64,000 bases of DNA from Tubulanus polymorphus (GCF_964204645.1 NC_134032.1:11520275-11584274); one strand, 5' to 3'; positions 1 through 23,475 are shown, numbered from the stretch's first letter. Numbers and translations are program-made. Notes: generated by a model from the letters alone, not told the origin.

Positions 1-156
1 GTCAAACGACATGAATGTACCCACACCGGATACCGGCCGTACTATTGCCCTGTTTGTATGCGCGCGTTCACGCAGAAGGTCAGCATCAAACGCCATTTGT
101 TCAATGTGCACGGACTGAACGAGCTGAAACATTTCCACGATTTCGGACTCCGTTGA
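1..156 (+). CDS. 3' part of a C2H2-ZF terminal cassette exon, cut by the window edge
   Basis: Frame 1 reads VKRHECTHTGYRPYYCPVCMRAFTQKVSIKRHLFNVHG...LR*; not in the ORF track. Confidence 0.85.
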   Translation, partial: VKRHECTHTGYRPYYCPVCMRAFTQKVSIKRHLFNVHGLNELKHFHDFGLR

Positions 157-661
157 AAAACGCTTCGCGGCAAAATATGAACAGCGAAAAATGCTTTTTT
201 CGTATAATTGATATGACTTTGAACAATCTTAATTTCACCGTGACAATCTGACATCTGGTTTGTCATCATTTTTTCACTTGATGTATTCAAATGGACTGCG
301 AGTTTTATTCGGTTTCACGAGGATTATGAGAGGCGAGGCTTCACAGATGGTTTTGACGTTATCTTTAGCGACAGTTGCTACTGGAGGCATAACGTTAGGT
401 GCGAATTTTCCTCGATTCAGTTTCAAAATCGTGAGTTAGATTTACCTCTGCGGTGAAATTATTTTGTAAGGAACTCGTCTGAATTATAGATTTTAAGATC
501 TGAACCTACAATTCAGAAACTGGGAGTTGTGAAATTTTGAGAATTCGGGAAATATTTGAACTCCTGAATCTATGATGTTATGATGTAACTATTACTCAAA
601 ACTCTTTGTCACAAAAAAAGAATTATTTTTTGTAACCAGTTTCCTAATCGGCATTTTGCAG

Positions 662-1029
662 GTTATCCGACTTACGACCCGCTTGCTGCGCAATTCGGGA
701 CTGGTGGCGCCGTCTACGATCATCAGCGACAGTACGTTAACCTGCCGGTGAGCGACGCCGCCAAACGCGTAGATTTCTCGGATTTGCTTCCGTCTGCCGA
801 GAAGAAGCCTCACGTCTGTTCGATTTGCGGCAAGAACTTCGCATATTTGTCGCTGTTGAAGGCTCACTTACGCAGCCACACCGGCGAGAAACCGTTCGAA
901 TGTCGCATCTGCACACAGGCATTCTCGATGAAGGGCAATCTGATGGCGCACATGAAAAGCAAACACAATATCGATAAAACGATCATCAAAGAGTTGTTTC
1001 GGCAGACGGCGCGTAGTATGGACCCGTAA
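662..1029 (+). CDS. Alternative terminal exon, 2 C2H2 fingers (array 1)
   Basis: ttttgcag|GT acceptor, phase 1, in frame with ORF 748-1029; HX3H + HX4H fingers with TGEKP linker. Confidence 0.85.
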
Positions 1030-1546
1030 CACGAAAACATCTCGAATAGAAACTGACAATCCAACAGAGTAAGGATTGAGAGACAATGGTAGAGCTGAAT
1101 GTTTTTGACTTTTTTGAGTTTCTTAAGTAGTTGTTTAAACCGAATGCATGCGAAATGGACCTTTACCGGGAACGAAACTGGAGCGGGAATGAAATAGAAA
1201 TCGAAGTGGAATTCAAACTTTTCAACGGCAACTTTTCAACGGATTGTTAACCCGCTTCTACTGGCATATCACAGGACCTGGTCGAAGAATTTCCTCATTT
1301 TTTTTCTAAATCTTTAGATGCCCTGCGTCAATTCGAAATTAGACTCACTGAATTCAGTTCCACAGTTGTGAATCAAATTTGACTGAAGTTTATTTACGTA
1401 AGACCCCCTCCCCAAAATCTATTTTAGAACCCCAGCTATATCTTAAAGCCCTTATTTTAACAAAAGCATATTTGTTGGATTTTGAGGACCACTCATTTCT
1501 AACTAGAGTTGAAGTTTTCTAACACAATTTTTGTGCAATTTTGCAG

Positions 1547-2049
1547 GTTCGCACCGGTTCTTCCCTGGTATGCCAGTAGGTGGCGGTAGCGCGCCGATGT
1601 ATCATCATCAACAACAACAACAGCAAATGTTTTATCAATCGAAACCGATAACTGCAGGTAGGGGGCGCCCTCGCGGAAGCAGGGGTGGACGAGGTCGACC
1701 AGTATCGCGTTCTGTCGGCGAGATGGCGCCGCCGTTTCAGCAGCAGCAGCAGCAGCAGGCGCCTCAACCCAGTGGCGGCGGGAGTCGAATTTTATACGAC
1801 GAGGAATCGGGCGAGAAACGCTACGTTTGTTCGTCGTGCGGCAAATCGTACGCGTCGAAGTCGGCGTTGGCAATTCACAATCGTACGCACTCCGGCGAGA
1901 AACCGTTCAACTGTCGCATCTGTCAACAGGCGTTCCGTCAGAAGGGGCACCTGATGTCGCACCTGAAACGCATTCACAACATCGACCAGTCGTTCATCGA
2001 CGAGTTGTCTCCGCTTAAATCGAGACCGAAAACCGAACCGGCTGATTAG
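1547..2049 (+). CDS. Alternative terminal exon, polyQ, AT-hook/RG-rich segment, 2 C2H2 fingers
   Basis: ttttgcag|GT phase 1; GRGRPRG motif; Q runs; two fingers. Confidence 0.85.
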
Positions 2050-2589
2050 AGCACCCACGTCGACAGTAATTCCCGATGATTTCATCGATTTTTCCGAAAA
2101 CATGCGACTTTAATGATTATTGAACGTATTCATCGAATGCGCTTATTGCTGATTTGATTGATTTATCGCGCAGGTCGGGCTTATTACGCGGAGGCCGTCT
2201 AGATCTTAGTTCATTATCGAAAAGATCACGGTCAAATCATTTATGTAACGTGTTTCATTAATCAAGATGTCTTGGATCTATTCACCTGTACTTAAATGTT
2301 TTAATGTTCGCTGAAATGTTTGTATACTTAACCTGTACATTAGAGGCTACACTTATTTGGATACTGTACGCTACGAGCAATTATCGCAACGTTGAAATAA
2401 TTGCTCGTAGCTGTATGTTTGGGGCTTCATGTATTTGGCCGTGTACATTACTGTTGATGAATTATGTCAATATCTACGTAAACCATGTATCATGTTTATT
2501 TGCGTTGTACGGTCGGATGATTCTTTAGATATTTTAATTTGTGTTGAATTATACTCGAGTTTAACGAACATGTATATAATCAGTGTATG

Positions 2590-2746
2590 CAGAGTCAAAG
2601 CCGCTTAATCCGGATTTTGGTCTTATCCGGGCAATATTTGTACTCCATTTGTTCACTTATATGCAAGAAAATAGCTTAATCGGGATTTACTGTAAACCGG
2701 ATGAATATTCTAGGTCCCAAATGATCTGAATTAAGCGGATTCTACT
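2590..2746. mobile_element. Degenerate Tc1/mariner(Tigger)-like MITE
   Basis: Imperfect TIRs: cag..gccgcttaatcc and gaattaagcggattctactg. Confidence 0.4.
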
Positions 2747-2809
2747 GCGTCAGCTTTTTGATTTTTGGGATAGTTAGATAACTACTCCCTCAAAAGTAGT
2801 TCTAATTTG

Positions 2810-3022
2810 AGTCTTAGTTCCGCGGTAATGTGGGTTTAATTTGACTATGGATGCAATTCCGAAGTTGTTCTAGGTTTAAGTTTTCCGGATCCAGTGTCAC
2901 AGTCCCGTGAATTTGATTCGACTGGACCCAGTTCCACAGTTGTTTACATTTGATAACTTCTGCAACCGGTTCCACAGTTATGTGGGTTTAATCCCAGTAT
3001 GGATCCAATTCCACAGTTGTGT
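2810..3022. repeat. Tandem degenerate copies of the dispersed ccagttccacagttgtg repeat family
   Basis: About 5 variant copies; the same motif occurs at ~1355, 13612, 46216, 51335 and 63592. Confidence 0.6.
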
Positions 3023-3631
3023 ATGTTTGATTATTGAATTGATTCTTTATCAAGGATATGTTCTGATTGACCAATCTGTCTGCTTACTCATTCTATGTTA
3101 CTCGCATTTCTATACATAATTGTTTTATGTAATAAAAACAATTTCAAATTGAATTCTCAAAGTCTTTATTGTACTGTTTTGTCGAGGGAGGAAGTTTTTT
3201 CGAATTCGTCACGCACTTGTATGTTTCTAAAGGATTTAACCTTCACAATTCAGGAGTCTTCTGGTTCATAGTATCGGAACAGGGAACCTGGACAATACAA
3301 CGGTTTTGATTTAGAATTCTCGAGGAGCCCCGACTATTTCTACTGAAAATGACAAGACTGACTGAAAGCTATATATGCTTAAGGAACATTTTCAAATCGG
3401 AATCCGAGTAGAACTATGAGGGGCCAAATATTTCGTGACATTATTCATCGAATGAAATTTCCAAGATTGATTTTTAAAGTCAGAAAAAAATCGTTTGCAA
3501 TTTCAGAGCCCGATTGCTGCAAAATTTGCCACAATTTCAGGATTTTCTGTTTTCAGACCGATGAATGTAGGTACCGGATGGAAAAGGGTTAACTTCATTG
3601 AAAATAATATTCAGTGTTGTGCATTTTACAG

Positions 3632-3948
3632 GTGGCGTTTTCCTCAGTGAACTGTACCGCAGAAGCGTTAGCAGAGGCAGTCGGAGCGGCCCTTCCCGTC
3701 AGTTAGAAATGGAATATCCACCGGTGGCCCATCAGCAGTTTGCGAGTCAACGACATCGATGCGCCATTTGCGATAAAGGATTCGCGTCCGCTTTGTTGTT
3801 GAGGATACATCACCGGTCGCACACCGGCGAAAAACCGCACGTCTGCGCCGTGTGCAAAAAGCGTTTCACGCAAATCGGAAATTTAAACGTTCATTTAAAA
3901 CGCGTTCATAACATTCGCTACTGCGTCGCGGCGGACGAACCAGAGTGA
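3632..3948 (+). CDS. Alternative terminal exon, 2 C2H2 fingers
   Basis: ttttacag|GT phase 1, in frame with ORF 3598-3948. Confidence 0.85.
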
Positions 3949-4228
3949 AACGTCGTTAATATATCGGCTCGAAGGGATTGGTTTTTTTCTTCGTCCGTGT
4001 TGATAGTATTTTCGTGATTGTTAGGGGATTTCTGCTGTTATCTTTGCTTCGCTTTTCTCACTAGAAACATCGGACATATCCTCGCTAGAAAAATTGAAAT
4101 CTGCCTTGTAACGCGGTTTTTTAAACGAATTTTGCGAGGCAACATTTTGCGTTATACCTAACCGAAACATAACATATATATGTAGATAAACACTAACTAT
4201 AATTTTGACGTAATTCGAAATTTTCCAG

Positions 4229-4614
4229 ATGCGAGGTGGTCACCGTGGCAACAAACGTACGAAAAAACCAGAATGCAAACTGCAGTATCTGCAACTACGA
4301 GGAAATCGACGCCCGCCAAAAACGATTGGTCGCGCCAGTGTCAGATTTGTTTGAAAGTTTGTCGCAACCGCTACGATCTGGACGCGCATTTGAACGTGCA
4401 CACCGGCCGGAAGCCTCACATCTGCCCGATCTGCCGAAACGGTTTCACGCAAGTCGGAAGTTTGAACGTTCACCTGAAGACGGTTCACTCCGGATCTAAG
4501 CCTCACGTTTGCCCCGTGTGCCAAAAATCTTTCTCGAAGATCGGAAATTTAAAGGATCACCTGATTCGTCTTCACAACATCTACGAAGACGCAGTCGCCG
4601 AAGGACCTGACTGA
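4229..4614 (+). CDS. Alternative terminal exon, 3 C2H2 fingers (WSxxQQ/DWSR subfamily)
   Basis: ttttccag|AT phase 1, in frame with ORF 4273-4614. Confidence 0.85.
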
Positions 4615-4859
4615 AAACCAAATCGAACCTGAAATTTGTGTTTTCTTTGAAAATTGTCGATTACTGTTCAATTTTCGGTGTCCTTTTGTTGTCAAGTTTA
4701 GTTCATTCAGACATAATTTCTATAGAAACCTTAACGTCGAAATTTTGTTTCGATGCAATTTTCTGAGAGGCGCCATTCTGTTTGAAGTAATCCTGACGTA
4801 ACTTTTTTATCATGACAATAATTCGAACAATAATTCTGATGTAATTCGGAATTTTCCAG

Positions 4860-5155
4860 GTGCGAATTGGTCACGATGGCAACAAGCGTACGAGGAAAGC
4901 AGCTGCGCGCAGACGGCCGGGTCGCCGAGGAAACGGACAGACGACCAAAATGATTGGTCTCGGCGGTGTCAAATTTGCTTGAAGTATTTCCGTAGCCGCT
5001 ACGATTTGGACGTTCATTTGAACGTGCACACCGGCCGGCGACCGCACATCTGCCCGATTTGTAATAAAGGTTTCACGCAAGTCGGAAATTTAAACAAGCA
5101 TTTGAAACGCGTTCATAACGTTCTCTCGTGCGTCGCGGCAGACCGACCGAAATGA
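4860..5155 (+). CDS. Alternative terminal exon, 2 C2H2 fingers, no ATG
   Basis: ttttccag|GT GCG AAT TGG...; reads ANWSRWQQ...DWSRRCQICLKYFRSRYDLDVHLNVHTGRRPHICPIC...HLKRVH...*; missed by the ORF track. Confidence 0.85.
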
Positions 5156-5460
5156 TCATCCTTTTCCCTAAATGTTGCGGAAATATAACAGGAATATTTT
5201 GGGTTTTTTTTTAAATGAAACTATTATTTTTTTGTGTGTTACGCGTTGGAGAAAATATCCAGACTGAAATTAGCATGTACAAGTATATTATCTTTTTAGT
5301 GGAAATAAATATAGACTTTTTTCGTGAACGTGGTTTTCTTGAATTTCAGAGTTCTTGTTCGAGGTTTTTGCAAGACTTTATTAACTTACTTGACTATAGG
5401 AAATTGGTTGAAAATGACAAATGAGCAGAGACAAGATCAGAAAAAATTAACACAAGCATT

Positions 5461-6290
5461 AATTTTGACGTTGGTCGGATTTTCCAAAATATGAAATGGT
5501 CGCGGCAGCTACTAGTGCGAGAAAATCAACAAGTTATAGACAAAATCTAAAATTCTAGGAAACCTACACCTGTGAGGATAGGTAAATCAACACTTCCAAG
5601 GAAATCGAAATCTACATCTACGAGGATGTATGTACACTAGCTGAGACCGATCAGTCGCGCCAGTGCCCTGGACCTCGCATTTCTACCATCTGTAAAAGAG
5701 GTTTTTAACGAGTCCCACATTTAAACCTTCACAAGAAAACAGTACATAGCCATCCTCCCCTGGCAGGTTGCCTCGGTAAGGTCGTGCCGTGGTTGAGTCG
5801 ATGCCATCAGGTTTGAATCCCTACCGTGGGAGGATGTTCATAGCGGATTCCTTGAGCTAGAAGTTTATTCGACATTTCGACTATATTCTAATATTCAGCA
5901 TTAGAAACACAAAAATGCCGCCGTGTACAACTTCTACTTCTATGTACTTTTAGGCAAAGTTCATAGCGGATTAACACTAATGTTTGTACCACATATAAAC
6001 ACTCACCTGAAAACTGTTCATACTGCAAAACTCACAAGTTTGCAAGAGAAACGTCTTACTCAATCCCCCGAAGTTTTAAAAAGTTCACCGGGACTCGGTT
6101 CACATGCGATTAAAACGTGTGTAGCATTTGCAAAAAAGGTTCCGGGCAATCGAACAGTTTAAAAACTCGCGTGGAAACTGTTCTCCACACTATGTGAAAA
6201 ACCTCATATTTGTACCGTGTGCAAAAAGGTTTTACGCAAGTTGCAAGTTTCAGCATTTAAACAGTCACGTGAAACGATTTCATAGCAGTC
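5461..6290 (+). pseudogene. Decayed ZF cassette (pseudoexon) of the DWSR subfamily
   Basis: Family acceptor cggattttccag is mutated to cggattttccaa; frameshifted remnants tcgcgccagtg, HLKTVH, HVKRFH; possible SINE-like insert near 5760-5870 (ggtttgaatcc). Confidence 0.65.
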
Positions 6291-6751
6291 GCTTATTTCT
6301 CTATCTTCAATTTTGAACACTAGTGCGGTTCTCTAAAAATCTTCAAATGTTTATGATGAACTGATGTGATATAGGACCGGAGTTTTCTTTTGAATCCAGT
6401 TTCTTTTCTTCTTTTTATCAACAAGGAGCAATTCCTGGTCCAAATTCACTGCTGACCTGTTTCATTTAGCGCGATGACAAAGGGATTTGAGATGAAGTTT
6501 CCGTGAACACTGGATCCGGGAAACTTTAACTAGAACAACTTTGGAACAACTTTTAACTAGAACAACTTAGACCGTTGAGCACACATGTATTGACAATTTT
6601 TGTTAATGGTTGTTTTTGTATTTGTTTTATTTGACATTTATAGAAATCATGCCGTGGTTTTCGCATGATTTTATAAATCTGACAATGAAAAGGCAAAAAG
6701 GTAGAACGTGACAGAAATAACATAAACATAATTCTTATTCGGATTTTCCAG

Positions 6752-7491
6752 GTGTCGAATGGTCGTCGGGGCGACAAGCGCAGGATACGAGCGGCGTACA
6801 AACGGAGACGCCGTCTTCGTTGCTGAGGAAATCCGCGCGCGCCAAGAAACCTACGTGGAAGTCTACAGCCGCGGCGATAACAACACTGGCGACGACGAGA
6901 TCATCGCCTCTGAAGAGAGATCGGTCGTTCAAGTGCCCTGCGACGAAATCGACGCCTTTGACGAAAGAGAAGCCGTTCAAGTGTCGGGTTTGCGCGAAAA
7001 CGTTCGAGCGACGCCGCGATCGCGACGTTCATTTCAACGTTCACACCATCGAGAAACCGCACGTGTGCAACATGTGCAAAAAGCGTTTCATGAGCGTCCC
7101 GTGTCTGGAACTTCATCTGGATACCGCGCACAGCCAGTTAAAACCGCACGTTTGCCCCGATTGCAAGAAAAGTTTCACCACGGCTGGAAATCTAAAGGTT
7201 CACCGCAAAACGGTGCACACCGGCGAAAAGCCGTTCACCTGCCCCGTGTGCGAGAAGAGTTTCTCACTGGCCGGGAATTTGCACGTCCACGTGGGAACCG
7301 TTCACTGCGGGTCGAAAGCTCACGTTTGCCCGGCTTGCCATAATCGTTTTTCGACACAGGGTAATCTGAAAATTCACATGGAGACCGTTCACCTGGGAGT
7401 CAAACCTCACGTTTGCGCCGTTTGCACGAAATGTTTTTCGCGAATGGGAGCTTTGAACAACCACCTGAAACGCGTTCACAACATTAAGTAA
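6752..7491 (+). CDS. Alternative terminal exon, 6 C2H2 fingers
   Basis: ggattttccag|GT phase 1, in frame with ORF 6820-7491. Confidence 0.88.
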
Positions 7492-8050
7492 CTCGCGGAA
7501 ATCGTAAATTTGAACAACGCCCACTTCGAAAACTGCGTTTACTACATTCACTGAAACTATGTCAAGGCAGCTATTTAGACGCTGATACCAGCCGGACGCC
7601 GCCGGTTTTCCGTTTGCAAAGCGAACAATTTCAACGAACATTCGCGTCAGAGGGCTTTCACAAAGGATTACTTAAATGCACACATCAAAAAATTTAAAAC
7701 AACTCCGCGAGCTACATTCTCGATGACTTAAAGCCTCCTAAAAACCAGCGAATACACTTAATAAACTCTACTTTGATCGGAAAAACAGATAAAACAGATC
7801 AAAGTGAAATATTCCATTTATGTAGAATTACTGTATATATCAGTTTTTCTTAGATGCATTTAGACATCGTGAATTTAAACACCGAGTCAAATTTAGTGCA
7901 CTGAGCGTATATATGCTTTGAAAGCTTTGTAAAATGGATCTAAATTTCAAAAGCCTTGGTTTTGAAGATATAGTGGCCGATGAAAAATAGTAGGACGTGA
8001 CTATTTGATCAGGAAAAAACTATAACTTTGCTGTAATTCGGATTTTCCAG

Positions 8051-8334
8051 GTTTGAACTGGTCGCCGTGGCAACAGGCGCAGGACGAAAGCATTTCCGAA
8101 ATGGCGCCAGCGACATCGACGAAAACGCCACGAAAAGAAGACTGGTCGCGTCAGTGTCAGATTTGTGCGAAAGTTTGTCGCAATCGCTACGACCTGAAAG
8201 TTCATTTGAACGTTCACACCGGCCGGAAGCCGCACGTTTGCCCGATCTGTCGGATGGGGTTCTCGCAAAAGGGAAACTTGAATCGGCATCTGAGAAATAA
8301 ACACCATATTGCGAGTTGCGTCCCGATCGATTAG
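8051..8334 (+). CDS. Alternative terminal exon, 2 C2H2 fingers
   Basis: ggattttccag|GT TTG phase 1. Confidence 0.85.
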
Positions 8335-8701
8335 AATCACGATACTAGCGTTATCCCCAAAACTTGTAGGGTTCATGAGCTATGATCAACTAAGAATCTC
8401 TAATACGGTTACGAACTGTGGCGCAATTGATCGAAAAACTTTTCCCGCGTATTGCTCTTTTGAAAATAAAAATATTATCAAAGTCAAATTTTGGTAATAA
8501 CTCGTAAGATTTCAACCAGCGCAATGGAAGTACCTTCAAGTTGAAGGCTCTTTCGTTTCAATTGTTAGGTTTTTTCTCGATTTCAGGAGTCTTGCCCAAA
8601 ATGATATATCCCCGCCGTAACCCGATGGAAATAGGGAACGGAGCATGGCATGATAAGAAATTTGAATTGAGAAATAATTTTCACGTAATTCGGATTTTCA
8701 G

Positions 8702-8955
8702 GTGTTAACTGGTCCCCGCAGCAACGAGCTGGTGATAATAGCGGCGGGGCAAAGTCGGCGACGCCGCGCAAAGACGATTGGTCGCGAACTTGTCAAGTTT
8801 GTTTGAAAGTTTGTAGAACTCCGTCCGCTCTGAAGACTCATTTGAACGTTCACACAGGACGGAGGCCTCACGCCTGCCCCATTTGTCGGATGCCGTTCTC
8901 GCAAAAGGGTAGCTTGAATCGACATCTGAAAGCTCAACACCACATCGTCCCATGA
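8702..8955 (+). CDS. Alternative terminal exon, 2 C2H2 fingers, missed by the ORF track
   Basis: ggattttcag|GT; VNWSPQQ...DWSRTCQVCLKVCRTPSALKTHLNVHTGRRPHACPICRMPFSQKGSLNRHLKAQHHIVP*. Confidence 0.85.
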
Positions 8956-10202
8956 TTAGAACTCCTCTCACGTCGTACATGTAACTCCTGATCGCTGTTG
9001 TAGCCCTGCAAATATTCTAACGCTTGCGAGTCTAGCTTTCTTATCTACGGAAAATGAGAAACGGTCAATTAGATTTTTAGATTCGTCTTTTTCAATCACT
9101 TTTTCTTTAACGAGAAGATTCTTCTGTTGGAAGCATGAATTTCTTTATGACATCATAATGTCCACACGTTCTTTGCTTCATTTCAACTGTGGCCAGTTTT
9201 TATTAGTTTTTCAGGAACGCATTTATCAATACTATTTTCATATCCTGTATCTTGTGTATAACCTATTTCATACTAACTTCGCTCACTTTTAAGTTACTGT
9301 AAATTTGATATGCATGTATTCGGTTTTTGATTCACACATTTATAGTTTTTTTATGTTGAAATCTTTAAAACGTATTTGTGAATTTTTAAAATATTTTAAG
9401 AATTGTATTGGAAACTTAAAAAATGCTGGTACAAATCCACAGCCTCGACCGTGCACCCTACTCAGACAGTTGATAGCGCTATTCTTCCATGATCATCCCG
9501 ACTTCACACTACATAATTTCCAATTCTGAAGGGGCAGGGTCCTGGCTGCAGATTGTCTGAAGGGGTAGTTCCAGGCGGCAGATTGTCTGAAGGAGTAGTT
9601 CCAGGCTGCTAGTGTTTGATACCAGCATGAAATTGAGTTTTTTAATTTGAATTTGTACATATTTACCTTCGATGTTGAAGATAAAATTTAGTGAAAAATT
9701 CACCCAAAAGAATTCTACTGTGTCTATCTTAGGTGTAGGTGATTGTAATATAATCTTTTGAATCTATTTGATAATGAAATAAACTTGAGTTTGATAAGCG
9801 AAAACAATCGAGTTGATGACGTCATTTTTTTGGGAAAGGTCTCTCCATTGGAAATCATTCGCAATTGATAAAATATTGACAAAATATGTGAAGGAATCAT
9901 CCCTCAGGTCTTGGAAGGTGACAGACTGCAGGTTACAATTGTACGGTATCAGAAGTTAAAAAAATCGATGGTGGTAAGGTTTTATAATCGGATGGGCTTA
10001 TACCAACCCGATCTTGAAACTAAACCGCAGATAGGTTACTGACTAGTGTAGACGGAGCTTATAAAATGGTGAAATATCAATTTTTAGGGAGAAGGACAAT
10101 CCCCTTATTGCAGACTAATGCTCCTACCTGGAAAACTTGCGAAGGAATGCTTATTGCGCAATCTCGAGAGTTTTCAATATGGTTTTTTCGTTGATTTTTC
10201 AG

Positions 10203-10567
10203 AATGGATAGCAACTGCGCATATGGGTGTTGGCGGTGGTAACAATAGTGCGATCGATACGGAATCCTACAACACTCGAGACAGTATCGGTGGTATTTTT
10301 CCGCAGATGAGATTTTTCGAAGGGAACAATGCCGCAGCAGTAACGGGTACCAAATCTCACGCCAATCACAGCGGCGCGGGTAGTAGTCTGGCGTTACCGC
10401 ACGTTTGTCAAGTTTGCGCCAAGCGGTTCATAACGCCGAGTAAACTAAAAGTGCACATGCACGTACACACCGGTTCGAAACCGTACGTCTGCCCGACCTG
10501 TAACAGACGATTCACACAGACCAGTAATCTGTACAGTCACATGAGAAAGTTTCACCAAAGAGTTTGA
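10203..10567 (+). CDS. Alternative terminal exon, 2 C2H2 fingers
   Basis: gatttttcag|AA phase 1, in frame with ORF 10118-10567. Confidence 0.8.
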
Positions 10568-11066
10568 TAAGACTTCACGTAATAGAGAAAACGACTGCAC
10601 TTAGCTTTATAGTATGTGGATTTTTATTCTTCGTGGTTTTTGTCTCATTTGAAAGAATGTTTTCCTGTTTCATGCATTCTCCTTTAGAAACACCTTCTTC
10701 ACAACATTTTACCGAGGGTCTAGCTTTGAAGTACATGGTTTTGAATTTTTCTGAATTTCTTTTGACGGTTTCGGTCCATAACATTTGATGGAATATCTTA
10801 TTTCGTTATAGGCTTTTCATTTTTCACACACCTCCTTCTCAGCATTTTAACGAGTGTCTAGCATTGTAGTTGGTAGAGATTTTTGTCCATTAATGGAACA
10901 TCTGTACAGTAGATTCCTGCTAACTTGAGACTGGTAGTTGAACAAAAATTGAACGCGACCGACCAATATTTTTACAAGCGAAAATAATTCGTAGTCCTTA
11001 AGATATTTGCACTTAGTAACTTTTCTAGGCTAGAATTCTAACCGTTTTTCCCGTGGATTTTTCCAG

Positions 11067-11401
11067 GTGCTGCCATCGTCACCCTTGAACACCCCCTGCA
11101 GATGTACATGCCGACTACCAGCACCACCAAGTATCAGCGACAACAACAACGATTTAATCATTCGATAACCATGCCAACAACGGCAACAACAGGAGGAGAT
11201 GTTGCCATTCCGCCGCCTCAAATTTGCTACAAGTGCGAAATTTGCTCGATGTCGTTCGATATGCCGAGTACTTATAAAGTTCACATGCGCGTTCACACAG
11301 GACTTAAACCGTTCAGTTGCCAGATTTGTCGCAAGTCGTTTTCGCAGCGAGGAAATTTAAATGTTCATTTGAAAACCGTTCATCGCATGTTACCCGGATG
11401 A
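11067..11401 (+). CDS. Alternative terminal exon, 2 C2H2 fingers
   Basis: tttttccag|GT phase 1. Confidence 0.85.
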
Positions 11402-11826
11402 GATACGTACCATACTTGTTTTCCGTGCCGGACTTATAAGAGGAAGATTTATGCGGGCCATGCCTCTGACCTCGCTCATCAGGATGTATATATTTTAATT
11501 TGCTTCATGGCTTCGGTCGCGAGAGCCATCGTATATCTATCTTGTTTCGCTCTCAACCTCTGTAGAACCGTGTCCTGCGAATTTTTAGCCAACTATAAAC
11601 CCTGAACTCGGCATCCAGCTCCACTGTTCTGACTTATGATTTGACTGGAATTTTGTTGATAATGTTTTTAGCGATATACTCGTAAAGAATCATGGTTTAA
11701 AAATGACAATAAAGGATCGTGTTATGATTGTTTGGAAATGTGCTTGGTAAAAATGGACCCAAAAACATCCAGATCCTTTCATTTGACCGACTAATACAAT
11801 TACACAAACTATTTGGGTCTTTTCAG

Positions 11827-12257
11827 GTCGGACCCATGGAACGTTTGGATTTAGCGGCAACATGGTAGAATTTCAGAACCCGTTCGACGCGCTGTCCATC
11901 GCGAATTCTCAACGGGCGATATCGACGATGCCGAAACCTGGTGGTAAGCGAGCGAAGAAACCACCAACCGAATTCAGACGAGGATCGAATTTCCGAGGTC
12001 GCGGAGCCGCTGCCACGGTGGTGACAGGCTCGGCGTCGGGCCCGCCGCAGCCAAAACTGATTACGAAAACGTACCAGTGCCCGTATTGTAATCGGTTGGA
12101 TAGTAGTAAAGCGATGATGAATCGACACATTCGATGCCACACGGGCGAAAAACCGTTCGCGTGTCCGGACTGCAGCTCCAGATTCAGACAGTCGAGTCAT
12201 ATGTACCAGCATATGAGGCGAATTCACGGATATACGAACCAACCAAAGAATGGATAA
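11827..12257 (+). CDS. Alternative terminal exon, 2 C2H2 fingers
   Basis: cttttcag|GT phase 1. Confidence 0.85.
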
Positions 12258-12804
12258 ACGAAACATATTTAACTTGAACTGTTATTGACTAAATCACCTT
12301 GTGAAATTCTATCCTTGATGTTATTTTCCAACCACTGAATTTGGAATCGTAGGACAATAATGAAACCGTCAAGTATTTAGATTCTACTGTTAACTCTTGT
12401 TCGAAGTTACGTAGAAGATTATGACAAAGTTATATCTTATCTTCTTGGACATTATTGTTTTAAGTAATTGTGCTACGACAGATTAGTTTCAAAAAACATA
12501 TTTTGTAATGTTTCCATGTGACGATTTTGGACAGTGGGGAGTGAGTTTCTTTGGTCCTGGATCCCCTGATGTTGAAGAGCATGCGACCGTATCTGACCTT
12601 GTATATCCTCATCAAGTTCTCCTTGTCCATGCATCCCTTCCGATCTATCTGAATCATTTCTGACCGCTAGACCTTCCACTTCTGCCTACCCTGAGATTTT
12701 CACCCTTGGCTTCTGATTTCATTCATGTTTTCAGTTGTTGTGTTGATGTTAAAGACATTACTGGCCACGGTTCAATAACTTATTTCTCTGAAATCTATTT
12801 GCAG

Positions 12805-13133
12805 ATGGCGCCACGGTCGTAAACGCTGCAAATCTCGAATTGCGTCTGCTATCCGAACCTCTCGTCGACGGCACCCACCTATCCGATGTGCCTCATGCTG
12901 TCGAATGTGAGGTTTGGAAAAATACCAAACGCTGCCCTATCTGTGGAATATATCTGCAAGCTTACTGCTATTTCGTCGCCCACATGCGAACCCACACGGG
13001 CGAGAAACCATTCGCTTGCAACATTTGCTCGAAACGCTTCGCCCGCCTAAGTAATCTATATGCCCACACCCGCCGTGTTCATCATATCGAACCGTTACGC
13101 CAAAACACAGGACTCGGTGCCTATAAACCCTGA
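12805..13133 (+). CDS. Alternative terminal exon, 2 C2H2 fingers
   Basis: tatttgcag|AT phase 1. Confidence 0.85.
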
Positions 13134-14281
13134 AGCCCTATACCCAGTGTGTATAGAACCTTAACGATCGGACCCAGTTTTCAAACAGTAACCTCTGAAC
13201 CTAGCTTAACTCATTTGTCATTTAACAATGTAGCACCCTTCACAAAACTATTGGACCCAGTGTCAGTTTGTAGAACCTGATTGGACCGAGTTGAACCTGG
13301 AAATAAAACTATAGACTGTGATGCTTAGATTGGGCTAAGATCTTGTATTGACTGGAGTCGTTTTATTACCGAAGTGAACTCGAAAAACTGGTTTTTGGTG
13401 TAAACCAGGGTCTGGATAAAAAGTTGTATTTTCATCAAGTATATAATGTATAGTATGTTTCGATCCCAGATTCTTTGTTTCCAAGATGATTATCATCAAT
13501 ATTTCTTGGCACTGGCCAAGATAGATACGTAGAGGGATAGACTTTTGTTTCCCTGTAAATTTTTGGTTTTCTTTTTGTCGAGCATCTTTATGAGTTACGT
13601 GTAATTATGTTAGCCAGTTCAACAGTTGAGTTAAAATGAGTTCAAATATTGTTAACCTTTGACGCAAAATCGTGGAACCGGGTCCTGCGTATATAAACTG
13701 ATTTTGTGAGTTATGATAGAATTTGAAATTCAATCGAGTTATTGTTCTATTATTTGTGTTGGTCTTATGTGAAAACGTTGATGTACAGTTTGTAATTGTT
13801 CAATTCGATGCCTCTAAAAATGGCTTATCGTAAATGACACGAGCGAATGAATTGTTTCTTTGCTAAAGTTTTGAAAATAAAGAGTTTTTCATATGAAAAT
13901 CATACATTTTCTTTCTTGTTCTATTTATTTCTTGCTGCTAGAATGAGGATTATTTTCTCTCGCTGATATTGAGGCTGAGGATTGAAGGAACAATTATGTC
14001 TGACTTTTAACTAGGATTTTGTCGACTAGAGCTTCCATTAGTTCCAGAGGGTACCACCATCTTAAAGGGGTTATGCGTATGTGGCGGCCAGATGACGTGC
14101 TGTGACGTCATGTGCATATCATCCATTCCGACTGATGGATTTCCTTCGGCTTCTGAAGAAGGACCAAACGTCCCTTCGCCCGACTTCTTTGAATGTCCAA
14201 TTATCTATATTTATGTAGCATCTTGTAACAGCGTTTTCTGTTGATGAAAAAGAATTTATACATTTTTCCGCAATTTTGCAG

Positions 14282-14520
14282 GTGAAGGCTGCAGTCCAGT
14301 TGGTAGATGGAGAAATACAGTCAAACGAACGCGTCCGCCCAGACCTTACAAGTGTAGCTTATGTAACAAAGGATTCCCGTCGAGAAGCGCTTGTCAAACT
14401 CACATCCGCGTACATACTGGCGAGCGCCCGTACGCCTGTCATCTCTGCCCCAAACGATACAAACAGAAAGTCGATTTGAAAACTCACATGGCCGGAAAAC
14501 ATGATTATTTCCTTCTGTAA
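14282..14520 (+). CDS. Alternative terminal exon, 2 C2H2 fingers, missed by the ORF track (which shows another frame)
   Basis: ttttgcag|GT; EGCSPVGRW...YKCSLCNKGFPSRSACQTHIRVHTGERPYACHLCPKRYKQKVDLKTHMAGKHDYFLL*. Confidence 0.85.
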
Positions 14521-15090
14521 AGAGACAAGATTAGAAACTGGCGAGGGATTTATTTGGGACGTTAGTGGCCTCGTGTGAGGCCGGACTTCTTAACTTGAAC
14601 TTGAACTTGAAGATGTTTAAGGCCCTAACGGGTCTGTTCGTCATTCCGATTTTTGTAGCTTCATTGATTTTATGCGGCATGCGTGGCTCTAAATGTTTGT
14701 GGCAAACTTATATAACTAGTGCATAAGTTTAGGTCTGGCAGATTGGAACGTAGACACTTGCCAGGTCCTTCCAATGTATGTCGAATCTAGCCTTGAAGCA
14801 AAGTGTATTGCGCTTACGTGAGCTCGTGGCCTCACGCGAAGCTGGATCTAGAGCCAGTTTATTCCTTTTGTCGATTTTCATTCATTTATCTATATAAACA
14901 GTTTATGCGTCGCGAGTTTCATCAACGGACCGGTCGTGCCTCTTTCCCCTCTCTAGCTGTGAATCGTTCTCAAACGGCGGATTTTGCTGCGGACCCTGTA
15001 CTGTTTACTAGGTGGTCTCCAGTTCCATTATCACCAATACATTAACATTAAGCAATATTAACCAGTTTTTACTTTATCGTGTAATTGCAG

Positions 15091-15440
15091 ATATGTTCGG
15101 GCCGCTGCAAATCTCACCGCCGAACACCGCTCGACACTTCGACCCCGCACAGATGCTGGATCGGAGTTCATACCAACCAGGAGGACATGTAGAGCGGCGA
15201 CCCGGAGCTCGGCTCCTCGAGACCGCTCCGCAATTACCCAACGGCTATTCGTGTCAGTTCTGCTTCAAAAGTTTCCGAACTCCGTCGAAGTTGAATCGAC
15301 ATCTCGTCGTCCACACCGGAGAACGACCGTTTAGATGTGTCGTCTGTCCGAAGTCTTATAGTCAGAAGGTTCATTTAACTAATCATATCAAACGGGCGCA
15401 TCCGAACTTCGATTTGGACCGATGTCAAATCAATTTTTAA
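15091..15440 (+). CDS. Alternative terminal exon, 2 C2H2 fingers
   Basis: aattgcag|AT phase 1; AATAAA at 15535. Confidence 0.82.
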
Positions 15441-15878
15441 CGCTTTGGACGAGTTTTTTTTCTTGAATCAGTACATGTATGTCCTTTTGTTCAATTTATA
15501 TATCATGAAGCATGTCTTAGTAATACGGCTTGAAAATAAACAGTTTTTATAATTAAATCGATCAAATGAATTTTGAATTATTTTGTGGTTTTGCACTGGC
15601 TTTAAAAAACATGCACAGGCTACCCAATCTGAGATCTGCGACCTTGTATCTGCCGAACATCCAAGAAAGGAGCCGATGAATCGTTAATACCAAGGAATTT
15701 ACCTTTTTGTGCCCAATTCTGGTATCCAGTCACGACTGCACAAGTGAGCAGTCATTACAAACAAGTTGGGGTCCGGGGTGAATCGAGATATTTTCATTCA
15801 ACAATCTTGAAACACTTCATAATTTGTAAATATCCAGTCACCCCCTAAAACCGTTAATTTCAATCGTTATCATTTCAG

Positions 15879-16192
15879 AAAATGACAGAAATATGTTCTA
15901 CCGGCACCTCAATATCTCGTCTAAACTGGAACAAAATTCGTCTACACACCTCTTAACAGGTGGTGTCGACGACAGACCGACAGGAAGTGGACCGCCTATG
16001 TATTCTTGCGCGGTGTGTGGAAAACAGTTCACCGCCCCGGCTCGAGTCAGACGACACATGGTAGTACACACGGGAGAAAGGGCATTTAAATGTTTGATTT
16101 GTCAGAAATCCTACACCCAGAAAGCAACGTTAACTAGTCATATGAGAAGAATACACCAACTTGTAAATTTCCAATTCAGTGATCAAATTTAG
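15879..16192 (+). CDS. Last cassette of array 1, 2 C2H2 fingers
   Basis: catttcag|AA phase 1; AATAAA at 16497. Confidence 0.82.
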
Positions 16193-16632
16193 TAAATCTC
16201 TTTAATCACCTTGATCATCCATTTGATATATTTCCTCAATATTTTTCCTACAGGTGTCCTACGCCATTCTCTCTAGGTTACCACCACTCTGAACGGAATT
16301 CCGTATATTATTTCTAAGCTACGTACATAGGTGTTCATTTTAATTGTTTTGAAATTCGATCCTAACGCCAAGATTCTCTCTAGGTTACCACCACTCTGGA
16401 ACAGAATTCTAACATTTTCAGAAATCTAAAATTTTCGTAGTTGTCATTTAAACAATGTATTTGATGATGTGACGATGTTCTTGGATTTGCATGTAGAATA
16501 AATAAATTATAAGTTCAAGCGTTGTAACTTTTTAATTTGTTCGGTTGATGCTGAATGGAGGATGAAGTATGCCTTAGGTTCCAGCCCAGTCCCCGTGCAT
16601 GCTAAGTGGAGCGAAGGGTATTGATTCTGGGC

Positions 16633-17461
16633 CAGGGGCGGATCCAGGGGGATGGGTAGACAGTATTGGAAGGAAATTTAAGGGCACCTTTCTGATCTTA
16701 GGGCACACCCAGTATCCAGGTCAATGCGAGCGCCGAAGGTGCAAAGTCCTTAGAGGGGGTCTGGAAAATTTTTGAAAATATGGTACCATTTAAAGGCTTT
16801 TAGAGGGCTTCTAGAGGCTAACAGAGCAATCCAGAATAAACGAATTCGAGACAAGATTTCAACAGATGTAGATAAAAAATGAAGCTGGCGAACCCATGAA
16901 AGAATGGTTGTCGCCAACTTCGCCTAGTGCCCCTATAATCTTTAAAAGTGCTCCTTAACAATTATACAGAATACGGCTAAGTGCCCCTTCATTGTTAACA
17001 ATCGGCAAAAATTGCCTCGTCTTCACATTTATCTTTATGTCGTGTGCCATTTTCCAAACCAAAAGTGCCCCTAAAATTTTAAAAATTAGGCAAAAAAGTG
17101 CACTTTTCTTCAACATTTTCCGCGTATAGTGCCCTCTTCTAAAGTACGAGTGCCCCTTTAGCCCTCCCTGAAAAGGCAAGGACAAGGTGCCCTCATCTAA
17201 AGCATGAGTGCCCCTTGCAAAAGGAAAGTGCCCTTTTTAATTTATCATGATTAAAGGCTTTACAAATATGATTATCTCTCCTCACTTTCTCGGCAGCAGT
17301 ATATACCGATTAATTTTATAATTATGCCCGGATTACGGACACGGAATTAGCGGTTGCTGAAATAATGCCGTCAAAAATATTGCGGGTGAAATTTCGAAGG
17401 GCACTTAAAAATTCTAGACCGTATTGTGCAATACGGCTAATACGGTCTGGATCCGCCCCTG
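16633..17461. mobile_element. Non-autonomous DNA transposon (MITE) with CAGGGGCGGATCCAG TIRs
   Basis: Perfect 15-bp TIRs; tgggc directly flanks both ends; internal gtgccc/gggcac repeats; related end at 28968-29075 and related ggatccgcc ends near 58090 and 60920. Confidence 0.75.
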
Positions 17462-19266
17462 TGGGCGGTTTTGGATGCCGATCGGTGGATAAAAAAGGAA
17501 GCACCTCAGATTCGAATGACAATGCTGAGGTAGTTATAGAAGTGGTCCGGATCCTGCCTTATACAGGCCCACAGTCATTCTGTGATGACAGTTCTGTCAC
17601 TCGCGTTGTCCTTTTTTCAAACAAACACTACCCAATGGGGATATTGTTTCCCCCATAGAAAGAGTACTTGCACCGCGATAGTACAAATTTGTTGAGACTT
17701 ATCTTCCATAGAATTGTTAACACCGGGGCTTTGATTGAATTGCGCAATCCAATCATTTTCTGCTTCATCATTATATTCCATGTACATGTACTTTGGCTGG
17801 CAAATTTTTGAAGGCTTAATGCTGGTGAATCACATTATGAAAATTGAATGCGGACCCGTTTAAATGTAGTCGGTAACCTGACTGTGGTTTAGTTTCACGA
17901 TCGGATATTTTCACAAACCACAAACGATTGCTATAAGCCCATCCGATTATAAAAAGCTTAAACGATTAGGTAACCAGTAACTAGTTTAAATGAAGCCCTC
18001 GGGCTTAGCCGACTCTGCTTAGTTTATTTCATCATTGTTTTGTTTCAACCACGAGGATTTCGTCGAATAGTGCGCTTAATAAAGCGTTTTAGTGATTAAT
18101 TTAGTACGATACGATATTCGCGGCCCTCTCCGCGACGGCCACTGATTCCCCGGCTCGTATCCTCATGGACAGACTGACCCTGTACGCATGATTTGATACC
18201 GCCATACTCTGACCAAAATCAAAAATTGGGATAAGTAAATTGGAACATCAAGAAACGAAATTCTAATATGAACTTTCCTAAATTTACATGATGATGTACC
18301 GTTTAATCTCCAGTTGAGTATCAAAATTAAAGAAAATAATTTGTTTTTTTTAAATTATGAGTGGTAAGCATGAAGTTTTTGGCAGAATTTCAGAGGATCG
18401 GTGCTCCAAGTAATTAAAAATGCCTCATATGTCTCCCCTCAATTGAATCGAGGAGTTTTTTTTAATGAAAATCTGTCTATTGACGGGATTCTGTGATAAC
18501 AGTATGAATGATGAATAATCGTGAATGCATGGTATTAGTGGGTTTTCCCCCAATGACTCAAATAGACCGCTTTCCTCGTGCATGTGAGGTAGTTATCTCG
18601 GGGTGCATGAACTGTCCGTGACTAAAAAAACTAATTTCATTAGTAAATGTTTACGCGGTTTCTATGATAGGAAGACCTGTGTTGGTGTGAATCTTTAACT
18701 GGAAGTGCTATCGGTCGGTATAATTTATAAATTATTCTAGAATTTAAGAAAAAAAACAGGCGGATGCTTATAAATTCGGAAGTAGCTGTTGGGAATCAAG
18801 TAATTTATTTCATGGCCTTATTAAAGTTCCTCCACTATATTGTTCAGCTGACTACTGGCGCGTATTCAACCCGGCGGTGGAACCTCATAATGTAAATCCA
18901 TTCAACAATAGAGACACAATTGGGGGTTTTCAGAGTTGTTGATATCATTCTGACACGCGCTATTGAATACGTCACCGGCTGACCACGGTGTACACAAGCA
19001 TAGACCATTCACCTCAGCTTACTCACACTGTGAACATGCTACCGTGGATTCTCCTCCTGGCGATTTTCGCTGCGCTCCCGCTCCTGCTCCTGTTCCTGCT
19101 TCCTGAGGAATGACGTCTTTATGTTTTATGTGTTACTGTTTGTCTCTGTGCTGTCCTGTACTGTTCTGTGTTAATTAATCCGTTCTATTTTTCAGCAATT
19201 AACCCGTTTTGTTTTTCAGGGCCGATTTCTCTGTCGAATTTCAACGTTTGGTGGAACAAAACTAAT

Positions 19267-19340
19267 GTCCGAAAGCGTCAGCTCTCCTTCGCCGGTCATG
19301 TGTCGAGGATGTCAGACAAAGAGTCGGTCAGGAAATTCTG
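19267..19340 (+). mobile_element. Tiny non-LTR (RTE-like) reverse transcriptase C-terminal remnant
   Basis: VRKRQLSFAGHVSRM resembles the R-x-x-x-L-x-W/F-x-GHV-x-RM motif of LINE ORF2. Confidence 0.5.
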
Positions 19341-19499
19341 CCCTCTACACGCCCTCATACGGAACACGAAAACCAGGATGACGAGGCCTCACTGCCCCCA
19401 CCTATCTACATAGTGTGCTGAGTGATGTCAATGACGGGCATATCTGCGGGATTGCGCGGGATACAAATGGAGCGGTTATACTGGATTGTCACGCCACTA

Positions 19500-19765
19500 G
19501 CATTCATTGGTCCTTGTGACCGCCCGGATGAGGGATGATTCTACTGTCACGCCCTTTGTTTCTGGTATTCTGAGTCGGCTGAGGGATGATTCTACTGTCA
19601 CGCCCTTTGATTTCTAGTTTGAGTGCTAGTTTTCATTGTGTCCTTGTGACAACCCCGGTCAGTGGATGAAGTCTCTTGTCGGCTTGTGAGTGCTAGTTTC
19701 ATTGTGTCCTTGTGACAACCTCGGTCAGTGGATGAAGTCTCTTGTCACGCTTTTGAGTGCTAGTT
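19500..19765. repeat. Short local tandem duplications (~50-67 bp units)
   Basis: gagggatgattctactgtcacgccctttg x2; gagtgctagttttcattgtgtccttgtgacaacc...gtctcttgtc x2. Confidence 0.8.
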
Positions 19766-22700
19766 GAGATCCTGAATCTCGCCCGGTCAAGCTGGTTGTA
19801 CTGCGCTATTTGTGTTTCGAGCAATTTTACAGGTGTGTCAGTTACTGACGTCGCCCAGTACATCCTGCAGTTAGATGGGGAATGTGAGGCGTTGTCATTC
19901 TGGTTTTCGCGTTCTGTGTGAGGGCGTGTAGAGGGCAGTATATTCCTGGCTGGCTCATTGTCTGGTGTTCTCGGCATTTGACCGACGACAGAGAGCTGAA
20001 AAGCTTTCAGACATTAGTTTTGTTCCGTACCAGGTTTTCATCGCTCTTCTCTTTTTTTCCTTTCAGGACTCCCAAGATGAAGAAGAAGATGCTGAAGGTG
20101 ACTACAACGAAGACGATGCCAAAAAAGAACACTGAACTCAGCAATATTGAAAGTTAAGTTGATACACATGTAAATTACGATGCGTGATACGGAAAGGATT
20201 GTGTAACTACAGAATATCGTTCTTTTACTCATTTCAGGTTAATCCGGAAAGGCCCATCTAAAGTCTGCCCACCAGAAGTGCCCACAAAAGACTCCACCTT
20301 GAAGTACCACCAAACACCGAAAGACCTGTCGCAACCAAACCTGGCAGTCTTGCATGGCTCATCCTGCATGGCAACAGGAATACATACATACATAAAGCTA
20401 AGTTGATTTTTCATATCTGGGGTAGAATGATTAGGCGCTGGTCAAGCTCATCATCTCCGCTCTACTTTATTGAGGCTCTGTGGCCGGTAGTAAATTGAAA
20501 TATAGCTAGCCAATGATTGCTTGAATATTTACAATATTAGACGAAATGATTGAGTGAGGTCCCTTAAATATTCTTTGGTCTGATAATTATAATGTAGATT
20601 GGTCAGTTATTGATTAAAAGATTTTGTAAGTACGTACAATTAAGGGAAATTCAATATCTTATGTGACATTTGAAATTATTCGAATGTACCGTAGATATTT
20701 CAGCCCTCATATGACTATTGTTTAACTGACAATCAAGATCTAGGCAGGACAATTTCTACTAAAAGATATATCAATTAAACTTTATCGTTGGTTGATAGAT
20801 TTTTCTTTACAAATAATATATTGATAAATTTATTAAGATTGAGGCCATACTTTACAATATATACTGTGTGCTGCCTCACACATAACAGTTATGAATTTCA
20901 TTAGATAGTGTCTAGGGCTCTACCGAGGTCTGGTGTCATATTGGGAAAACTATGGACTACAGGTCTTTATGAAACAGTGATTTGGTCTCAACACTTTGAT
21001 AAATCCAGAATAAACCAAAGCTTTAATTGATTTAATTCATTCCTGAAACACTGCGTCTTGTTTTGGGCGACGCATGATAATTGTTGTTTGACTGACAATT
21101 AGCATACAGCCAAGAAAAATGGCTTAGATATTCACAATTGAGATGAATTCAATATTTGATGTTAGATCAAAAACTTTTTATATCATAAATATTTATTGAA
21201 ATATAGCTGAAATATATAATATATTTGAGCACATCTATAAGTGAATCAGTCTCATTGACTGATCAGTTCTGTATCGCCAACTGCCGCGCTTACGACGACT
21301 AGCCATGCTTTTCATTATTGGCAAAATTTACTCAAACCTAACTGATTCAATTAATATCTAAAAGCCATACTGTGTGTCAAGTGACGCATATTAGATATAG
21401 TTTAATTGAAAATTAGAATCTAAGATGAATTACTCATTAACGTATTACTTAGATCGATTAAGGTTAATTCAATTGTTATGTGAAATTATTTCTAATTCCA
21501 TGGACATTTAAAATGTAGCTGATACATGTGTATCTGAGCACATTTATTTATCTGTATCTAAGTGAACCTATGGTGTCTTCACACAGCTGTATTAGTTTTG
21601 ATACATATTGCCAAAATCATTTAACGCAGATTTACTTCCGATCGAATCTGTGCACAAATACATTTCTGGATTTGGAAGGGGGAATATTTCAATTTCACTG
21701 TGTATGTCAGATTGAAAGCCTTATTCTGACAGGATATCCTAAACTTAGGTCTTATTCCTCTTGCTAATAGCTCTCTTTTACTAACCCCTCTCCTTCGAAC
21801 TATTTTGTAGCATCATGACTCGCACCGCACCAGGGTGGTCCGGTCATAACAAGGTCTTTTGGTCCTTATACACAGTGTACTATATAAGGGAAATAAAGAT
21901 TATATAGCCATTCGGCTAAGGGAATTTCTAATTTACCACTAAAAATATGCTTTTTTATCTTTAATTTCTGATGAATTCAAATAGTAACGAATTCGCCACA
22001 TCTGAAATTCTACTCATGTAGATTTTCAGGCTCCATATAAATATTGTTCAACTGACAATTAAAATATAGCTAGTATGATTACTAATTAATGGTTCGCTTA
22101 GATACCTAGAATTTAATTAAATTTAATTCAATGTAATGAATATAAGTGAAACAAAATTGCACAGTGGATGAGACGACTGTATCGCGCAATGTCATCTGCG
22201 TCTAACTGGGCCACATGTGTGTGTGTGGGATCTGTTGAATCAGTTAGGTTCTGGGGGATTCTGGGTTAGTTAAGCTAGGTATCAAAAGCTCTGATGCAAA
22301 ATTAGCAGTTCAAATAGTGATTAATTCAAATTCGTACCGGATCTGAAATTCTTCTCGTGTAGAAATTTCAAGCCCCATATAAAATATTGTCCGAGACAAT
22401 TTCAATTATAGCTAGGACATTATCAATTAACTTATAGATTAGGTATCTAATTCAGCATCTTCATATAAGGTAAAAGTGCTCAAATCTAAACCATAGGGGT
22501 TGATATGTATAATTCAATATTGGTTGATATATAAAGAATACTGGGTATGTTTTAACTCTGTCTCTTGTGCGTGGGATTTATTGAATCTTTAAGGCTTTGC
22601 AGAATTCTGGATTTGTCGAGTTGTGGGAATGATTCGAGGTTTCTTAAATCTGTAGAACCATGTTACTTATAGGATCAGTGTGCACAATGCTGGCAGCGCA

Positions 22701-23475
22701 CTCACTCTTCAGTTAGTTATATTATCATAATTACAAAATCATTGTATATATAAGGAGCAATATTTAGAATTAATGAAATGGATTAGAATACCATTCACTG
22801 GGTACAGATGTCGCCATCTGTGGGTAGAAAACATCTCTTAAGTTTATTAACTGACGACGAAGTAAATTTGATAATACGAACATGGTTTAGCTGACAATCG
22901 AAATATATATAGGCCAATATTACTAGCAGGTTTGCACTGTATGATGGGCCTGGGTTTCAATAAAAGACACCTCAAGAATTTCAAGAAGATAGAAGAGAAA
23001 ACAGTTCAAAAACGATTTGATAAGATTGATTATGCATTACTAAATTTGTTTTAACTCTGGTATTCCTAGAGATGACTATAGATGCTTTAGTTGAATTGTT
23101 GTTAAACTATAATAATCAACCATTGCTTAGATATTTAGAATATCGATGAATTACTATATGAGTTTCATAAATATCATTTAAGACTATTATTAAAATCTAC
23201 GTATCGATCCACGTTGCTGATCTTATATATGAATTGACATGATAATTATGATCAGTGATATTCCAAAGGATTTTCTGCTCAAAAGGTTCTGCTCTTTTCT
23301 TCAGCTTGCCGTTTCAGACTGATTGGAAGATAGTTTGAATGAACCGGAATCGAATTTCCCAATTATGTACTTCGATTTCAGACATACTCGAGAAAAACTA
23401 CAATAAACTTTAAAAAATTAGACAAATTTAAACGGTGAAAATGACAAAAAATTAAAGTTAGACAAAATTCTCCCT

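Follow-up and report, generated by a model that had tools for sequence, protein, structure and literature searches.

We analysed a 64,000-nt stretch of the genome of the palaeonemertean ribbon worm Tubulanus polymorphus (C8:11520275-11584274 in an assembly of 268 Mb; hereafter the window), whose first 16,192 nt carry a row of C2H2 zinc-finger cassettes that resemble alternative last exons. Coordinates are counted from the window start, and negative values are nucleotides upstream of it. Our main finding is that these cassettes very likely form the distal half of one gene with about 34 alternative last exons, which we call gene C and whose two constant exons lie upstream of the window at -23731 to -22118. 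A sequence-only reading of the window had proposed that the cassettes belong to a third, older constant region lying upstream, besides those of genes A and B within the window, or else that they are trans-spliced to the constant exons of A and B. An upstream constant region does exist, but it appears to be a close paralogue of those of A and B rather than an older one, and the window cassettes do not have it to themselves, since 18 cassettes of the younger type precede them behind the same constant exons. The position of the constant exon is thereby answered, and the trans-splicing alternative loses support.

Gene C has two constant exons upstream of the window

The DNA examined for constant exons comprised the window and the 80 kb upstream of it, a stretch of 144 kb. 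The 49-amino-acid exon and the large exon of genes A and B were used as tblastn queries against the upstream 80 kb, and both matched on the + strand. The 49-amino-acid exon matched at -23731 to -23585 and the large exon at -23321 to -22119, with 92% and 87% identity, respectively, to their counterparts in gene B. In gene C, exon 1 (C8:11496543-11496690, window -23731 to -23584) encodes 49 amino acids and begins with ATG, and exon 2 (C8:11496963-11498156, window -23311 to -22118) is 1194 nt long; both are open. Exon 2 ends in a phase-1 donor (...TCTG/GTAGGT), and an identical phase-1 donor is found in all seven large-exon copies of the 144-kb stretch. The NCBI model P0001 of the neighbouring gene A has matching junctions between exon 1, exon 2 and cassette.

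Between the gene C donor and the window lie 18 further phase-1 cassettes on the + strand, about 1 kb apart. The array begins 3.2 kb past the donor, and its + strand cassettes follow one another without a gap from -18920 to 15879, with no second copy of a constant exon found among them. With the 16 cassettes inside the window, the array of gene C comes to about 34. Neither constant exon matched a Pfam family. When the gene C constant exon and its distinctive part were compared with a protein collection, the only matches were NCBI models of paralogues (gene A and one other).

An RNA-like contig links exon 2 of gene C with cassette 15879

Contigs assembled from four sequencing runs of T. polymorphus (X1 to X4) were examined over positions 10150-16149 of the window. 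Run X1 has an even depth of 28-30 and zero joints and is thus DNA-like, while X2 and X3 are RNA-like: their cover is patchy, and they carry GT..AG joints that fall on the acceptors predicted at 11827 and 15091. The RNA-like contigs cover cassettes 11067, 11827, 12805, 15091 and 15879. A 604-nt contig of X2 covers 15874-16149, and the 24 letters ahead of this piece, which do not match the window, are identical to -22146 to -22123, the end of gene C exon 2. The piece on the cassette starts at 15874 rather than at 15879; because the last letters of the exon (TTCTG) resemble the last letters of the intron (TTCAG), the true junction is from donor -22118 (C8:11498156) to acceptor 15879, with an intron of 37,996 nt and the phase kept. 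Cassette 15879 is single-copy in the genome. Because the gene C exon is spliced here to the cassette farthest from it, the pre-mRNA must cross the whole array.

The constant exons of genes A and B do not match the 24 letters at several positions, which excludes trans-splicing to A or B for this junction. The 27-letter exon end has only two occurrences in the genome: one is in gene C, and the other, at C8:11640017-43, is in a further copy of the constant exon, K. The exon ends in TTCTG in gene C and in TTCAG in K. The piece of the X2 contig has exactly one mismatch, which is not among the tabulated differences away from the ends, as C as the partner predicts. With K as the partner, a stray mismatch at the end of the stretch and trans-splicing would both be needed.

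The cassettes of the window share one phase and one build

All C2H2 motifs in 1-16192 are on the + strand. There are 16 finger-bearing stop-to-stop frames, 15 of them complete and one cut by the window edge, plus one decayed cassette (Table 1), which agrees with the 15 intact cassettes, the truncated one and the pseudoexon counted earlier. Every one of the 16 has an acceptor, zf-C2H2 fingers and an in-frame stop of its own, and the spacing C-x2-C-x12-H-x3-H-x7-C-x2-C-x12-H-x4-H is common to them all. The claim that 13 of the 15 complete cassettes carry exactly one H-x3-H plus H-x4-H pair is borne out by the finger counts, the exceptions being 4229 (three fingers) and 6752 (six).

Every AG from the preceding stop up to the first finger was ranked on its pyrimidine content alone, with phase ignored. 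A phase-1 acceptor ranked top in 15 of the 16 cassettes (chance about 7e-7 at 1/3 per phase), and for the remaining one the RNA-like contigs show splicing at its phase-1 site, 15091; the invariant phase claimed for the array is thus upheld. The first two bases after the acceptor, which complete the split codon, are GT in 11 cassettes, AT in three and AA in two (Gly, Asp and Glu). Separately, we observed that the 11 acceptors of the form CAG/GT would rebuild G/GT at the spliced junction. This raised the idea of a second splicing step to a later cassette, but the bases that follow make weak donors.

Three cassettes (4860, 8702 and 14282) had been said to escape start-codon-based calling. They are indeed missing from the list of open reading frames with a start codon, having no Met at all (4860) or none before the fingers. 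The N-terminal parts of the cassettes as a whole had been called mostly unrelated, which is fair overall, but five neighbouring cassettes (4229, 4860, 6752, 8051 and 8702) have a common N-terminal start and a common motif before the acceptor. Further upstream, around -3000 to +700, the flavour of cassettes and acceptors shifts gradually. The description of the fingers as tramtrack/broad-type did not hold: they are generic Krueppel-type fingers with TGEKP-like linkers, their best solved relatives are ZNF568, PRDM9, CTCF and ZBTB proteins, and tramtrack is not among the best 60.

Table 1. Finger cassettes in positions 1-16192 of the window
Feature	Position	Strand	Remarks
Edge-cut cassette, 3' part	1..156	+	Phase-1 acceptor at -148; one finger pair; stop TGA 154-156
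Terminal cassette	662..1029	+	Phase-1 acceptor, one H-x3-H + H-x4-H pair, own stop
Terminal cassette	1547..2049	+	One finger pair; acceptor 1547 favoured (shared motif); 1577 and 1580 likewise phase 1
Terminal cassette	3632..3948	+	One finger pair
Terminal cassette	4229..4614	+	Three fingers
Terminal cassette	4860..5155	+	One finger pair; zero Met codons
Decayed multi-finger cassette (pseudoexon)	~5673..6316	+	Finger fragments in several frames, with stops
Terminal cassette	6752..7491	+	Six fingers
Terminal cassette	8051..8334	+	One finger pair
Terminal cassette	8702..8955	+	One finger pair; no Met before fingers; counterpart in mirror gene 82% identical in fingers
Terminal cassette	10203..10567	+	One finger pair; almost no RNA-like cover in the contigs examined
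Terminal cassette	11067..11401	+	One finger pair; RNA-like contig cover
Terminal cassette	11827..12257	+	One finger pair; acceptor used in RNA-like contig, from local donor 11746
Terminal cassette	12805..13133	+	One finger pair; RNA-like contigs continue to ~13828
Terminal cassette	14282..14520	+	One finger pair; no Met before fingers; no RNA cover in the contigs examined
Terminal cassette	15091..15440	+	One finger pair; acceptor used in RNA-like contig, from local donor 15011
Last cassette of array	15879..16192	+	RNA-like contig joins acceptor to gene C constant exon

The window cassettes have diverged further than the proximal ones

The mean pairwise identity of the finger pairs is 43% in the window array versus 55% for the proximal cassettes together with arrays A and B. 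Divergence at synonymous sites among the window cassettes ranges from 0.8 to saturated, and the ratio of non-synonymous to synonymous rates (dN/dS) from 0.14 to 0.7. From these figures, the window cassettes appear to be older duplicates under purifying selection, in line with the age and divergence ascribed to them before. Whole-genome searches with cassettes 662 and 15879 revealed no closer relatives elsewhere. The constant region of gene C is apparently not older: it is closely paralogous to those of A and B, and its exon end almost matches the one in K.

A mirror copy of the gene, Cm, lies head-to-head with gene C on the - strand, with constant exons at C8:11492071-11490618 and its first exon 4.4 kb from that of gene C. 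Cm has 12 cassettes in the same order as those of gene C. Identity is 96%, 97% and 89% for the first three, and the last three correspond to 6752, 8702 and 14282 of the window. The finger pairs of 8702 and 14282 are 82% and 96% identical to their Cm copies, and for 14282 the finger part is 95-100% identical while the flanks are 40-80% identical. Since Cm keeps both proximal and old-type cassettes in matching order, both types were part of one gene before the inverted duplication. The head-to-head layout of C and Cm suggests a shared divergent promoter region.

Gene C is one member of a larger cluster. The end of the constant exon is found in 17 copies in C8:11.41-11.64 Mb (a cluster of about 250 kb), with six copies on the - strand to the left of the C/Cm pair and eleven on the + strand to its right, so that the strand switches there. 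Copy K (C8:11639900-11640150) lies 55 kb past the window end and 104 kb downstream of cassette 15879. Over the last 145 nt of the large exon, K and C show two base differences, one of which is the last-but-one base of the exon (A for T), and their introns diverge about 65 nt past the donor. This pattern suggests a recent duplication or a gene conversion limited to the exon.

Proposed splicing of gene C and points against it

In the mechanism that we propose, the single phase-1 donor of gene C would be spliced to one of about 34 acceptors, followed by 3' end formation. In each cassette, a short motif of branch point and pyrimidines is followed by a phase-1 acceptor (in most cases CAG/GT, which gives Gly), then by a variable linker, at least one Krueppel-type finger pair and a stop codon. 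Every cassette would be used, one per mRNA, and the products would be a family of proteins with a common BTB-less front of about 450 amino acids and differing DNA-binding specificity, each tail binding different DNA sites. The layout of the gene, the match in phase, the selection on the finger part, one junction from constant exon to cassette and the use of two further acceptors are direct observations.

The following points weigh against this mechanism. The transcript evidence consists of assembled contigs, not raw reads; X2 and X3 were called RNA-like from the depth pattern and the GT..AG joints, not from a recorded run type, and X4, a run of 2015, has nothing on 10150-16149. Only one junction from constant exon to cassette was recovered, and the choice of C over K for it depends on a single mismatch and on gene order. 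In the contigs examined, RNA-like cover is hardly present on cassette 10203 and absent from 14282. In the protein collection, cassette 15879 has no match and no annotated isoform of gene C was found. An AATAAA or ATTAAA is present ahead of the next acceptor in nine of the 16 cassettes, and there is none in the other seven. Finally, the contigs at 11827 and 15091 are spliced from local donors, some 80 nt upstream, and not from the constant one, and the contig with the piece before 11827 is deeper than the preceding cassette, which fits simple read-through badly.

One RNA-like contig spans 11826 through cassette 12805. Because of this contig, and because seven cassettes have no poly(A) hexamer, some tails probably use a 3' end that lies beyond the next cassette.

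The local joints were found in X2, at 11746/11827 (an 80-nt intron, 11747-11826) and 15011/15091 (a 79-nt intron, 15012-15090). Both are GT..AG, and they confirm the two predicted acceptors. In the cassette frame, the pieces upstream of these donors meet stops 6 and 16 codons ahead of the donor and have no in-frame ATG after them, which rules them out as private coding exons. An AATAAA is found at 11708, just ahead of the donor at 11747. The local joints may reflect nested or read-through splicing of RNA that continues past an upstream cassette; there is a small probability that transcription starts locally before 11827 and 15091.

Around the first of these joints, at 11625-11755, we observed that run X1 splits into alternative contigs with several variant bases at half depth, so this is probably a heterozygous stretch. 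The RNA-like contig that leads up to donor 11746 breaks off here as well, which masks the start of that piece of RNA. Loose ends of X3 contigs at 11772, 11917, 12488 and 15547 were considered as splice partners and rejected; they are not GT/AG and none maps within the 144-kb stretch, and we take them for haplotype differences or assembly branches.

Alternative readings of the array

If local starts are real, the cassettes could be cis-spliced to gene C and in addition be transcribed locally, as the pieces ending at 11746 and 15011, and trans-spliced to the constant exons of both C and K. We regard this mixed mode as very unlikely. Similarly improbable is a mode in which the cassettes are transcribed from their own local starts and joined in trans to constant exons, possibly those of both C and K, as in mod(mdg4), where independent promoters serve the variable exons (PMC13490949). 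Every cassette is downstream of the gene C donor and on its strand, so that plain cis-splicing suffices. The 27-letter exon end in the X2 junction contig is compatible with K and C alike, but the single mismatch fits C rather than K, and K lies far downstream of the cassette to which it would have to be joined. RNA-like local pieces are spliced to 11827 and 15091, and one of them is deeper than the preceding cassette, as local starts would have it; these pieces are however cis-spliced to the acceptor, which would consume it. In the contigs over 10150-16149, no out-of-order junction and no junction of the A or B type was seen. Were local starts combined with trans-splicing nevertheless true, a spiralian would have reinvented the mod(mdg4) mechanism independently and without a BTB domain.

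The probability is similarly low that the cassettes are small independent genes, or transcripts with private first exons, which encode finger-only proteins and share a phase merely as a relic of duplication. Most cassettes do have an in-frame Met before the fingers, and two acceptors have donors 79-80 nt upstream, but the pieces ending at these donors are closed by the stops described above with no in-frame ATG after them, and three cassettes (4860, 8702 and 14282) are without a usable Met. Moreover, the phase and the acceptor motif have been kept despite saturated synonymous sites, and cassette 15879 is joined to a constant exon. Hardly credible is a separate, unrecognised constant exon near the window start, unrelated to the 49-amino-acid family: the flavour of the cassettes does change in that region, but gradually rather than abruptly, cassettes about 1 kb apart fill the space, the last cassette of the array is spliced to an exon of the C/K type, and in the mirror gene a single constant region precedes an array that holds cassettes of both the proximal and the old type.

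Comparison with known last-exon-swapping genes

The Drosophila genes lola (longitudinals lacking) and mod(mdg4) are the classic examples of a single gene that yields dozens of transcription factors by exchanging its last exon, and both are built on an arthropod-specific BTB domain. The gene lola has 20 isoforms, 17 of them with C2H2 finger tails, and BTB genes of the TTK type are specific to arthropods (PMC11426971). Gene C resembles lola in having common 5' coding exons, a row of alternative 3' exons that each carry a finger pair and a stop, and one splice phase. It differs in that it has no BTB domain: its front part belongs to no Pfam family, there is no BTB match within 10 Mb on the contig, and a search of the whole genome gave as the sole match on C8 one that is 10.8 Mb away from the locus. 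With no BTB near the locus, the possibility that gene C is a lola orthologue was rejected. It further differs in its host, a nemertean, in its ordinary Krueppel-type fingers, in its number of cassettes (about 34), in being one of 17 tandem and inverted copies, and in that trans-splicing is neither shown nor needed. Because it has no BTB, a non-arthropod host and ordinary fingers, gene C has a lola-like layout and is not a member of the lola/TTK family.

In mod(mdg4), the common exons are spliced to any of more than 30 alternative 3' exons; the protein has a BTB front and FLYWCH tails, and the variable exons have their own promoters and undergo obligatory trans-splicing (PMC13490949). Gene C is similar in having a row of more than 30 alternative 3' exons besides its common exons, while all of its cassettes are in cis, downstream of the donor and on one strand. 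In mod(mdg4), some of the variable exons are on the opposite strand. In the clustered protocadherin and UGT1A genes of vertebrates, the variable exons come first, each under its own promoter, and the constant exons form the 3' part. Gene C has in common with them one constant part combined with one of many tandem variable exons, but its arrangement is the mirror image of theirs and the proteins are unrelated. Genes A and B are paralogues of gene C and share with it the 49-amino-acid first exon, the large second exon, the phase-1 junction and the build of the cassettes. Compared with its paralogues, gene C has the longest array in the stretch of the cluster that was examined, with its most diverged cassettes at the far end.

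A limited literature search found no such locus described outside arthropods. The ribbon worm carries a lola-like design on an unrelated, unrecognised front part, with about 34 tails and with 17 such genes side by side, which points to convergent evolution of the diversification of DNA binding. It also offers a second, independent system in which to study how one of many distant acceptors, up to 38 kb away, is chosen.

The last common intron and other observations

We searched the last common intron for docking sequences by counting 12-mers of its first 3.1 kb able to pair with the 60 nt before the 34 acceptors, and no convincing selector or docking pair was found; the only outliers were G-rich words that pair with any pyrimidine tract (maximum 22 versus 16 in the reversed control). 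The start of this intron (GTAGGTGTTAAC...) is kept over the first 15-30 nt past the donor in most of the paralogues compared, on both strands, examples being those at window positions 32587 and 45164 and at the gene C donor. Two paralogues have the variant GTAGGCGTTAAC and one has GTAGGTGAGAAC, and the conservation exceeds what the donor consensus needs. At 273 nt past the gene C donor (C8:11498429) there is a 32-nt block with a phase-1 acceptor, five codons and a stop, which amounts to a micro tail without fingers. The block is 100% identical in C and Cm (C8:11490353, - strand), and it was not found past the donors of A or B with up to 5 mismatches allowed.

An Rfam scan of 1-31400 gave no match, and a scan for tandem repeats gave nothing relevant to the array. 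The 15 kb between the last cassette and the first exon of gene A (16193-31380, with the exon beginning at 31381) are free of finger cassettes and have several tandem repeats, such as the one at 23476-23920 with a period of 116. The GC content is 31-35% at 22-28 kb of the window. An open reading frame at 19168-19413 resembles, by eye only, the tail of a retroelement reverse transcriptase.

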